DNA of 64,000 nucleotides from Kudoa neothunni (Eukaryota > Animalia > Cnidaria), in NCBI GenBank assembly GCA_964304625.1, contig OZ199838.1, positions 14,875,907 through 14,939,906 of the forward strand, read 5' to 3'. The notes under the pieces were generated by a model that ran no database searches, was not told where the DNA came from, and saw only the letters and a program-made list of their open reading frames with translations. Shown one piece after another: positions 43,689 to 48,440 of the stretch; the first letter of the stretch is position 1; every line of letters begins with the position of its first letter. Position numbers and translations under genes: made by a program.

Positions 43689-45818
43689 GCTGTAATCTAA
43701 AGTTAACAATTTAAAATGTGCTTTAGCAATTTGTAGAATATATCCTAATGGTTCTTATTTATTATATCGAAAATCTTATTATATTGATAAATTGCTTTAG
43801 ATTATTTTTCTTACTTTTAAGTATTCAAAAAATCATAAAAAAGTAATAATTATGGCGTTATATTTATACTTTAGTATGAAAATGATGGATAAACAACTTT
43901 GAAAATGAAACTACACAATTTCAGGTGAATATGCCCCTGGGAGTTAACAGGATTTTGAGGGATCCATCTTGTTCATGCTCGTCACCTCCTAATTAAAAAT
44001 CAGGCTCACTTCCTCGATGTAACTTTAAATTTTTGCCCAGACACCTATGTGTTATTAAGCGATATTACACATTTAATTTAGGAAAATAATTTAAAAAACT
44101 ATCATTGATAAGTTATTCGGAATTGAATAGTTTTATTCAATATAATTTCTACATTGGTAATTTTATTTATAATCAGTTTTCGTTATGATGGCTTAGATTG
44201 GATTAAATTTTTAACAAATGCAGTTTCACAAAATCGGATGTTTTACACTCTTCTTATATTAAATAACTAGTTTCATCACATAAATTTAGAGTTGTTTTGT
44301 TTCAATCAAAAAATAACAAGAAAGTTCTAGTTAATATGCCCAGAATGACTTTTTATATAAATTATTCACCAATACATTAGGAAGAAACTGAGACGAACAA
44401 ATACTCGCTCCCGATTATTTCAAAGTTCTTAAAATAAACGAAAGCTTTACTAATTTTAAAGAATATTTTTCCATATTGAGCTCATTGAGCGCATTGAATG
44501 TATTAAGCCATGGCGGACCCTCGCAAATACACTTGGGAAGCCCCGCTCTCAGTAAACCTAAAAAAGCCAATTTCAAGGAGATCGACATAATCCTGATAAT
44601 TTATATGAGTTTTATTAATTTGAAAGCATACTTAAAAATCCCACACATTAATACATCTGGAGAGAAACTATCTCTAATCACATTTAGAGTTTGACCTCAA
44701 TTCGCATTTTCTACTTCAATGACCTAAATTAATGAGTATATTTTGCAGAGTTTCTAGTTATTTATAAGAATAAATATACATCAATTTAAAAGTATTACTA
44801 CCATTTATTCGAATTGAAGAATTATTGGTTCTAATATTAAGAAACTGATTTAAAATTCCCCTTCCTCTTAGTTACTTAAATGTTGGCGATAAATTGGAAT
44901 AATTATTAAAAAATTTAAAATTCAAAAATAATAATTCAACTGAATCTAAAGATTGCTATGGTTATTCTAATGGGAGGATACTATCCTAATTAGATGTGGG
45001 CCCGCATCATGTTTAAACTAAAAACTCCTACTTATAAGTTATAACTACGGGTCGCTGTTCTCGATTTTAATCGTCGAATTCTCAAAAAAGTTTAGACGTT
45101 TATTTTCCAGGAATATTCGAGAACTTCCGTAAAATATGAAATGAGTAGTAACTGGAAAGAAATTGATAGGTTTCTTGTTGAATGGACCAACATAGAGAAG
45201 AGGGAAAATGAATTAACCTGTAAATATTGAAAAGTGAAATTATCCTTACAAAAAATAGAATTCACAAGCAAATAAATCAAAGAAACATCACCAAAAAAGC
45301 GTTTCAAGACACTTCTCGGCCAGTTATTTTTTAGAGATAGAGAAAATGGCGAAATTAATAAAAATTTAGATTCTATAATTGTTCTCGATGTTTTTTCGCG
45401 GAGATTCTTGTTCGATTTTTTTAATTTGAAGTTTTCAAATATACGCGCAAGCGCACTGATGGACCAACAAAAAAACGTCGATTTTAGTTGTCGAACTTTT
45501 TAAAAATAAACGTCGAAAACTACGATCCATACTTATAACTAACTTATAATTTAAGTTATAAATGATATTCGCAGTTAATTAAAAAGTGCTATATTAATTG
45601 TTTCTGAACATCCGCTGCGCTTCCAAGGGTGTATGTAATTAAAAATAATCAAGACTAGACCTATCCCCATTTTATGGTTCGTAAGAATAATTAATCCTTT
45701 AAAAGAGCCTCAAGTCTTAATTTATAGAAGCGTTTTTCTGATAGCATATATAAACAGAAGATTCTTTTATCACGCCGCAAAAAATCGAACAACGTTGACG
45801 AAATATAAAAAATAAAAT

Positions 45819-47057
45819 CTACACGTTATCATTATCAATTAATGCGGTTGGCTGTGTTTTTTTAAAGTATTGATTTATAAGCAGAGTGAGTAAAATGATA
45901 GAAGAATTAATCAAAAGTAGATTGGAATTAATTTCTTTGAGAGAATTCGATTGAACTATCGCTACCAAATAAGCCAAAGTGGAAAATGTCACTCCTATCG
46001 ACGCTATAGATCCTACATTTGAGCTCATTTTATCATCCGTCATTGTTAATGTTTTCATGCTGGAGTAGACAATTGAAAACAACACAAGCAATAGAATATA
46101 GATTCGATATGGGATTTTTCGACCCAATTTAGTTTCCCCACCAGACACTTGATTGATTGCTTCTTGGATAAATCCAAGCGATACAAACACTGCAAGGAGA
46201 TCTCCAAGTGGAAACCATTCAATTGGTTGTTGCATCATCGACAATCCTGCGACACATGTGTAAAATATGAGCGGATATTTGACCAATAGTTGAAGATATC
46301 TCGTCAAATAAGAGTAAATATATGCCACAAATAAAGTCAGTAACATATGACCTTCACAGTCATTTCTAAAAACTTTTAAATTAACAAGAAAATTCGTCGA
46401 ATACACATTACATTAGAAAGTCGAAATTTGTACAATACAAATATGCCATAGTGATAGGTATAGTTATGGCGCATATGTTAGATATATCAAAATAGGATAA
46501 TTTGATATTTTCATCGACTGTAACTTTCATATCCATTTCTTCAACTTTCTCATCTTCCTATTATTATTATTATTATTAAAAATCTGATTATTTTGTAGTT
46601 GTTTAGGAAACATGTAATCACATACTGATTTTGTATAAAATTCAAAAGGACTGACCAACGTTTTAAACAGATAAAACGGCGGGAAAAAACAACTTTTTAA
46701 TAAATTTGTTACTACGAACAAATTAGCGAAATCAAGCCACACGTTTCCCATGGAAAGCAGCTCTTGATTGTGGTTGTAAAATGCGATTATCCATGCACTA
46801 GGTGTAGCTAATAGGTATGTTTGTTTTAAATTTTGAAATTCACACATTTTCAAAGTAGAAGTGTAATAAAGTTTCAGTTTTTCCAGCATAAAAACAGATT
46901 CGGTTTTTGGTGTAGTTTTTTTGGGATTCATTTTAAACTGTGGTCTTTGACATGTTTTATTTATTTTGGATTGATTTGTCAACGATCTGTATACGACACC
47001 TGTTTTTGTGTGATTTTTAATGATCGATTCGCTCAGAAGAAAGCCCCTCGTGAGCAT
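45819..47057 (-). CDS. Highly diverged COQ2/UbiA-like membrane protein lacking the Asp-rich motifs
   Basis: Exons 47057-46626, 46557-46412, 46365-45819 join in frame. TYLLATPSAWII resembles COQ2 TWLLYLPCTWSI; DEKVE ~ DKNVE; YSYLTRYLQ ~ YPFSKRYVQ; EA...TKL matches the neighbour; intron phases (0 then 2) match the neighbour. An upstream ATG at 47090 is an alternative start. Confidence 0.7.
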
Positions 47058-47120
47058 TTCAAAATATGAACATGCACGCATGCGCCACAATAAAAATTAA
47101 TCCTTTATTGAACTCACACT

Positions 47121-47150
47121 CATATATATATATATATATATATATTTATA
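47121..47150. repeat. (AT)n microsatellite between COQ2 and its paralogue
   Basis: CATATATATATATATATATATATA directly visible. Confidence 0.9.
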
Positions 47151-47168
47151 TGTAATATATAACTTAAG

Positions 47169-48440
47169 TTATAAATCAGAAAGTTGGCTCTTCTGCCTAG
47201 AGTATAATAAATCTAAAATTAGACCAGTAAATATTATCAACGCCAAATTGATGGAACCCTTAAAAATAGGCCCAAGGGTTTTAATATTTCTTGTGTCAAG
47301 ACGATTCAAATCTCTCATATAATACAACGAGGCGACAGCTAGTGAGAGATAAAAAGGCCAATTCTTATCGGTAATATAACCACAAAATCCAAGGGAAACT
47401 ATAGACCCCGCCATGAATGCGGAGATACTCGTCTTGGCATGTTTATGTCCGAAATATCGAGCATATGAATTAATATTGAGTTTTGTATCATCTTTGAGGT
47501 CTTGATAGGAATACACCGCTTCGTAAACCAAAGTATAAGCGATGTAAGCAAGTGCCATAGGAACAGCACTTTGGAGATCAATATTTAACTGTAACGCTTT
47601 GTAGACAATAGGAATTGCGACGGCATTAACACTAGCTAACACAATTGAAGGAATTTGTACATATCTTTTTGAAAAAGGGTATAGCGTAATCCCTACAGCT
47701 CCCAACAATCCATAGGGGAAACTAAATTGTATTATAGTTAAATAGAGTTTCAAAAGGGGAGGATTATTTTTGACGAGTTTAATGATAAAGAAGTTCACCA
47801 TTCTAATGGAAGACTAAGAAGTATTCCTAATGAAGCAGTCATAAGTCCACCAAGAATAGTTAATGCTTCACCGGTGGTCACTGATTGTGTTGCTAACGGT
47901 CGATTCTTTGTTCGTTCAACCTACAATATAGAGTCATTTATCCGACTTAACACCATTATTGACTTTACATTCTTATCAATATCCATATCTATGAGATCAT
48001 TAATCACACATTGGGCAGTTCTGGTGAAAAATGAGCCAAGCATTAATTTTGTAAACAGCAAAAGGTCAGGAAGCTGACCAGGTTCTGTCAAAAATCCCAA
48101 GGCCCACATAGCTGGTGCAGCAACAAAAAGTATTGCCTGTGGTTTATCCAACCTCATCAATTCCAAATATTTGTTCCTTTTTAGTTGGTTTTTAGTTTTG
48201 TTTTCGTTGTCGTTGTTCAACGCTGAGCATGGAGATATCTCCTGAGTCGAAGATGTAGATAAGTGAGTTGATTTTAATAAAATTGTTTTAGATGTGGATG
48301 GAAAGCAGATTTTATCAACATTATTCGATAAATAGCGATGTAAGCTTAAGGAGAATTTATTATTTGTATTGATCGCGCTGCCAAAGTGTCTAAACAGTTT
48401 TATTGTAATAACAAATATAAATTAAAACTAACCTTCCCAT
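47169..48440 (-). CDS. COQ2: 4-hydroxybenzoate polyprenyltransferase
   Basis: YLELMRLDKP, RTAQCVINDLIDMDIDKN|VERTKNRPLA, YPFSKR, YEAVYSYQDLKDD; introns 47921-47968 and 47722-47798 plus a 5' intron; Ser/Thr/Lys-rich N-terminal extension. Confidence 0.93.

Follow-up and report, generated by a model that had tools for sequence, protein, structure and literature searches.

A probable non-catalytic duplicate of COQ2 beside COQ2 itself in the myxozoan Kudoa neothunni

The aspartate-rich motifs of UbiA-type enzymes bind Mg2+ and prenyl diphosphate, and in the animals that make rhodoquinone (helminths, annelids and molluscs) the coq-2 gene carries mutually exclusive exons, giving catalytic splice variants that differ in a few residues of the pocket. 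The locus that we describe here, in a 64-kb window of the Kudoa neothunni genome (the whole stretch of DNA that was analysed), resembles these rhodoquinone-associated forms of COQ2 in that one locus region would give two COQ2-related products, but it differs from them in that the second product (that of gene B) comes from a separate gene without any catalytic motif. A likeness can also be drawn with the pseudoenzyme paralogues of metabolic enzymes, where an intact frame that has lost its catalytic residues lies beside the working copy; the homology of classic pseudoenzymes, however, is demonstrable by sequence or fold, whereas that of gene B is deduced from architecture. Finally, when gene B is set against COQ2/UbiA itself (PF01040, TIGR01474), the two have in common a tandem arrangement on the same strand, near-identical exon lengths, the same intron phases, helices distributed as 2+1+6, a long loop behind each of helices 2 and 6, the positive-inside pattern and the length of the N-terminal extension, but gene B has neither a significant sequence or profile match, nor the aspartate-rich motifs, nor the RT..RP stretch, and its loop between helices 2 and 3 (L2-3) is acidic. 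A search of the full-text literature for "UbiA" together with "pseudoenzyme" returned no paper.

We think that gene B is probably an ancient tandem duplicate of COQ2 whose product survives as a membrane protein of nine helices without catalytic function, probably in the mitochondrion.

COQ2 and the gene that follows it

The upstream gene (gene A) encodes COQ2, 4-hydroxybenzoate polyprenyltransferase, and occupies positions 47169-48440 of the minus strand in four exons (48440-48433, 48389-47969, 47920-47799 and 47721-47169). The three large exons are matched by PF01040 in Pfam and, collinearly, by TIGR01474 in NCBIfam (model positions 3-70, 72-108 and 116-281, with 55, 31 and 92 bits, respectively), and both aspartate-rich motifs are in place (NDLIDMDID and YSYQDLKDD); judged from its sequence, gene A is a genuine COQ2. 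It has a phase-0 intron at 47968-47921 and a phase-2 intron at 47798-47722. Its apparent first exon is of 8 nt only (ATGGGAAG, 48433-48440) and is followed by a 43-nt intron (48390-48432, GTTAGT...TTTAG); such a small exon is needed because the long open frame has otherwise no ATG upstream of the conserved domain.

Between the stop codon of COQ2 (47171-47169) and the ATG of gene B lies a spacer of 111 bp (47058-47168, minus strand), in good agreement with the distance of about 110 bp given by the first-pass annotation. This spacer contains a (TA)n microsatellite at 47122-47148 and, at 47109-47104, the sole AATAAA past the COQ2 stop, which is 47 nt ahead of the ATG at 47057 and 23 nt ahead of another ATG at 47081. 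Positions 47110-47161 were skipped as repeat in the read mapping, and it is there that both DNA contigs of run X1 break off. A DNA run covers the locus of gene B and has no differences from the assembly there. From the sequence of the interval, COQ2 and gene B may form a shared transcription unit or have overlapping transcripts.

Gene B had been described in the first-pass annotation as a three-exon gene of the minus strand at 45819-47057, and the exon and intron borders that we obtain match that description to the base. Exon 1 (46626-47057; 432 nt, 144 codons) begins with the ATG at 47057, the ATG at 47081, eight codons upstream, being an alternative in-frame start; it encodes an N-terminal extension of about 79 residues, whose basic and hydroxylated character had also been noticed in the first pass, and then the predicted helices TM1 and TM2. 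Intron 1 (46558-46625; 68 nt, phase 0, GTATGT...AATAG) separates it from exon 2 (46412-46557; 146 nt), which encodes an acidic loop, EDEKVEEMDMKVTVDEN, and then TM3. Intron 2 (46366-46411; 46 nt, phase 2, GTAATG...TTTAG) would, if retained, introduce a TAA stop directly beyond its donor. Six further predicted helices, TM4 to TM9, are encoded by exon 3 (45819-46365; 547 nt including the TAG stop). The exons add up to 1125 nt of coding sequence, that is, 374 codons, and the nine helices predicted from hydropathy and from the secondary structure given by AlphaFold bear out the earlier proposal of a multi-pass membrane protein.

Architecture and sequence compared with COQ2

The coding exons measure 8+421, 122 and 553 nt in gene A, and 432, 146 and 547 nt in gene B, with last exons of about 183 and about 181 codons, respectively. 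The phase-0 intron falls after codon 143 in gene A and after codon 144 in gene B, and the phase-2 intron at codon 184 and at codon 193, so that the claim of introns in phase 0 and then phase 2 at roughly the places of those of COQ2 was well founded. According to hydropathy, the helices are distributed over the exon blocks as 2+1+6 in both genes. In the last exon, the helices in AlphaFold2 single-sequence predictions span residues 3-19, 25-44, 49-77, 92-117, 121-140 and 143-182 for gene A (pLDDT 48.9), and 2-29, 31-42, 53-74, 86-106, 113-139 and 142-170 for gene B (pLDDT 52.1); since the real COQ2, used here as a control, scores as low as gene B, this single-sequence test has no power as a test of the fold.

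The loops follow the same plan. L1-2 and L3-4 are short in both proteins, L2-3 has 30 residues in gene A versus 38 in gene B, L6-7 has 28 versus 19, and L4-5 has in both cases 9-10 residues, two of them basic and none acidic. The regions rich in lysine and arginine (the N-terminus, L2-3, L4-5 and L6-7) are common to both and have the same parity, and the extension that precedes TM1 is basic and rich in Ser, Thr and Asn in both, with about 80-85 residues in gene A (when its first exon is counted) and 79 in gene B. A UbiA protein would be expected to have nine transmembrane helices, its N-terminus inside, and long loops on the cytoplasmic side behind TM2 and TM6. Hydropathy, the secondary structure from AlphaFold and the number of K and R in each loop predict this topology for gene B too, although it is not specific to the family. 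The overall likeness of the two architectures is partly post hoc, the choice of start codons and helix limits having been made by eye and the comparison without an empirical null drawn from the genome.

The genomic setting is relevant here. The assembly of K. neothunni has 40.2 Mb in three chromosomes plus a mitochondrial genome, with 30.4% GC, and the median values reported for this species are 112 bp for exons, 49 bp for introns and 3,578 bp for intergenic distances (PMC12239612). With such medians for exons and intergenic distances, two neighbours with long exons at 111 bp from each other are atypical, and tandem duplication is therefore the best explanation for their presence side by side. 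It is the gene architecture and the predicted topology, by themselves, that point to paralogy with COQ2 as the most likely relationship of gene B.

The aspartate-rich motifs are another matter. At the first motif site, gene A reads NDLIDMDIDKN directly before the phase-0 intron, versus VSPFEFYTKS in gene B; at the second, gene B has IQEAINQVSGGETKL versus YSYQDLKDDTKL in gene A, and the collinear place of YSYQDLKDD reads IQEAINQVSGGE. Both motifs are thus missing from gene B at the positions equivalent to those of COQ2, as the first-pass annotation had said, and UbiA-type prenyltransferase chemistry is therefore impossible for its product. The RT..RP stretch that comes after the first motif has been replaced in gene B by the strongly acidic run at the start of exon 2 (46506-46557, minus strand), while the same stretch of COQ2 is basic (VERTKNRP); in L2-3 of gene B, 10 of the 38 residues are acidic.

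The "patchy COQ2 similarity" that had been attributed to gene B, by contrast, does not rise clearly above chance in BLASTP, shuffle or profile tests, all searches with gene B having been run exon by exon. The best BLASTP match against the COQ2 exons has E = 0.048 over 18 residues of TM1 (LATPSAW versus VAAPAMW), the others having E > 1 or giving no alignment, and the shuffle z-scores are at most 1.7. An alignment anchored on the introns gives z = 2.2 for exon 1 and a summed z of 1.9, a sum that about 3% of hydropathy-preserving shuffles also reach. With an E cutoff of 10, neither Pfam nor NCBIfam gave a UbiA match for any exon of gene B. For a further comparison, a UbiA profile was made from 45 UbiA proteins of proteobacteria, which were taken from genome loci for the sake of diversity (a word search with E. 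coli UbiA gave only near-identical enterobacterial proteins). In hmmsearch with the filters off, this profile gives 0.2, -1.6 and 0.4 bits for the exons of gene B, inside the range of shuffled sequences, versus 52, 26.5 and 91.5 bits for those of COQ2 with the same settings; a collinear banded alignment of gene B to the profile has z = 1.1. A comparison with hhalign went the same way, with a probability of at most 0.5% for gene B versus 97-99% for gene A.

Weak local matches fall nevertheless at three collinear places, in TM1, L4-5 and L6-7. In TM1, a PxxW pattern is found in LLATPSAW of gene B, AAPAMW of gene A and WPtlW of the profile; in L4-5, YSYLTRYLQL of gene B may be compared with YPFSKRYVQI of gene A, three residues off the intron-anchored register; and in L6-7, ETKLGRK of gene B was aligned by eye with DTKLN of gene A and DlkiGvK of the profile, one residue off. 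As sequence traces of paralogy, these matches are suggestive only. Another candidate, the resemblance of residues 95-123 of gene B exon 3 to the region of the second motif (0.2 bits), was rejected, being off the collinearity of the helix map and not above shuffles.

Coding status and rival explanations

It may be asked whether gene B is a working gene at all, rather than a set of chance open frames or a dying, unexpressed pseudogene of COQ2. Such a reading could invoke the poly(A) signal of COQ2, which at 47 nt before the ATG of gene B leaves little room for a promoter, the fact that phmmer with exon 3 of gene B against 1.84 billion representative proteins gave zero matches, the value of 1172-1319 for the "recognition" of gene B by a protein language model, which is in the range of shuffled sequences, and the lack of support from RNA; on this last point, the three metatranscriptome runs labelled with the same species contain no parasite reads, and hence none on the locus, so that they are no test of expression (host transcriptomes are stated to contain very few reads that map to the parasite; PMC12239612). 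Against it stands the coding signal itself. In the whole window, on both strands, there are only 12 stop-to-stop frames of at least 150 codons, and four of these belong to genes A and B; exons 1 and 3 of gene B, whose open frames are 189 and 197 codons long, a rare length at 30% GC, account for two of the twelve, side by side on one strand. The GT-AG introns are well formed, of typical size and low in GC (19% in intron 1), and the middle exon keeps the frame. With a codon-score table trained without gene B, all three exons score positively, and in the reading frame only (exon 1, for example, has +0.06 in frame versus -0.44 and -0.23 out of frame). About 8% of random codons are stops at 30% GC, which is roughly the composition of the genome, and a neutral copy so diverged would fill with stops; an open frame of 374 codons is therefore hardly a neutral relic. 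The view of the first-pass annotation that a frame of about 370 codons suggests selection is thus supported, the intact frame and the codon bias being what speaks for it. Gene B is very probably a maintained coding gene, and we consider it very unlikely that it is no working gene.

If gene B is accepted as a gene, it could still be an unrelated, lineage-specific orphan coding for a multi-pass membrane protein, its likeness to COQ2 in layout and topology being coincidental. All homology tests of gene B were indeed negative. Besides the searches described above, a word-index protein search with exon 3, a sequence search of the PDB and a feature search of the ESM Atlas with exons 3 and 1 returned nothing significant for gene B, and a search of the organism's own genome for paralogues of gene B found only gene B itself. 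An exon of the true COQ2 gave no match in the PDB either, exon 3 of COQ2 gave none in the word-index search, and, as the window's own protein is absent from the results of both protein searches (word index and phmmer), these blanks say little about other Kudoa species. Myxozoan genomes are, moreover, described as rich in orphan genes in one report (10.64898/2026.02.11.705288), and hydrophobic helices arise easily from AT-rich coding sequence. An orphan origin would require, however, that the intron at codon 143/144, both intron phases, last exons within two codons of each other, the 2+1+6 helices and the pattern of loops and charges all coincide, and that they do so precisely in the gene that lies next to COQ2 on the same strand; we regard it as rather unlikely. 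We find it very unlikely that gene B is a re-tooled transferase, in which EDEKVEEMD...VDE, the new acidic cluster that the start of exon 2 contributes to loop L2-3, would serve instead of the aspartate-rich motifs: this loop, the usual site of the first motif, is certainly well provided with acidic residues, but the residues of the cluster are not spaced as in NDxxDxxxD, neither the second motif nor the conserved basic residues (RT..RP) remain, and no profile recognises the region. We also considered that gene B might be the missing UBIAD1 and rejected this candidate, since no UbiA model matches it, it shares the intron layout of COQ2 and the only further UbiA-family locus found in the genome encodes COX10 (heme O synthase; C1:15524199-15525100, plus strand; TIGR01473, 152.8 bits); no UBIAD1-like locus was found in the genome at E up to 1.

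Possible history and role

Descent of gene B from COQ2 is the reading that we prefer, and the following history may then be proposed. A tandem duplication of the neighbouring COQ2 would have produced gene B, which would then have diverged past sequence recognition in a fast-evolving myxozoan lineage. The chassis of COQ2 would have been retained in the process (the presequence-like N-terminal extension, the nine helices, the N-terminus inside and the long loops L2-3 and L6-7), and both aspartate-rich motifs for Mg2+ and prenyl diphosphate would have been lost. The product would accordingly be expected to have a UbiA-like fold, to reside in the mitochondrial inner membrane and to play a non-catalytic role. 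As for this role, our guess would be a protein that binds polyprenyl or quinone lipids, or a structural protein of the inner membrane.

The first-pass annotation went further, with a "scaffold, regulator or lipid carrier" and a "two-gene quinone module", which we take as conjecture. That gene B pairs with COQ2 is the step with the least behind it, and seems doubtful even at best. The most elaborate version would make gene B a pseudoenzyme with the UbiA fold, the first non-catalytic member of its kind, co-expressed with COQ2 (the spacer being of 111 bp, perhaps even as a single transcription unit). In the mitochondrial inner membrane it would then be a partner of COQ2, its regulator, or a subunit that binds polyprenyl lipids, while the parasite remodels its quinone metabolism; we consider this combination quite unlikely.

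If descent from COQ2 is true, gene B would be derived, as a dead enzyme, from the UbiA membrane prenyltransferase fold, and it would indicate that a myxozoan duplicate can drift very far while its exon layout and membrane topology are still kept. It would also be a warning that the "orphan" genes of such genomes may be unrecognisable paralogues. Gene B bears, finally, on the much-altered ubiquinone pathway of Kudoa, as a lead and not as a result.

One further observation concerns the 2 kb downstream of gene B, which are free of ORFs. A short repeated motif, TCGATTTTAxTxGTCGAA (with TAAGTTATAA nearby), occurs there twice, at 45035-45106 and at 45478-45576, about 420-520 bp apart, and is possibly the remnant of a repeat element.
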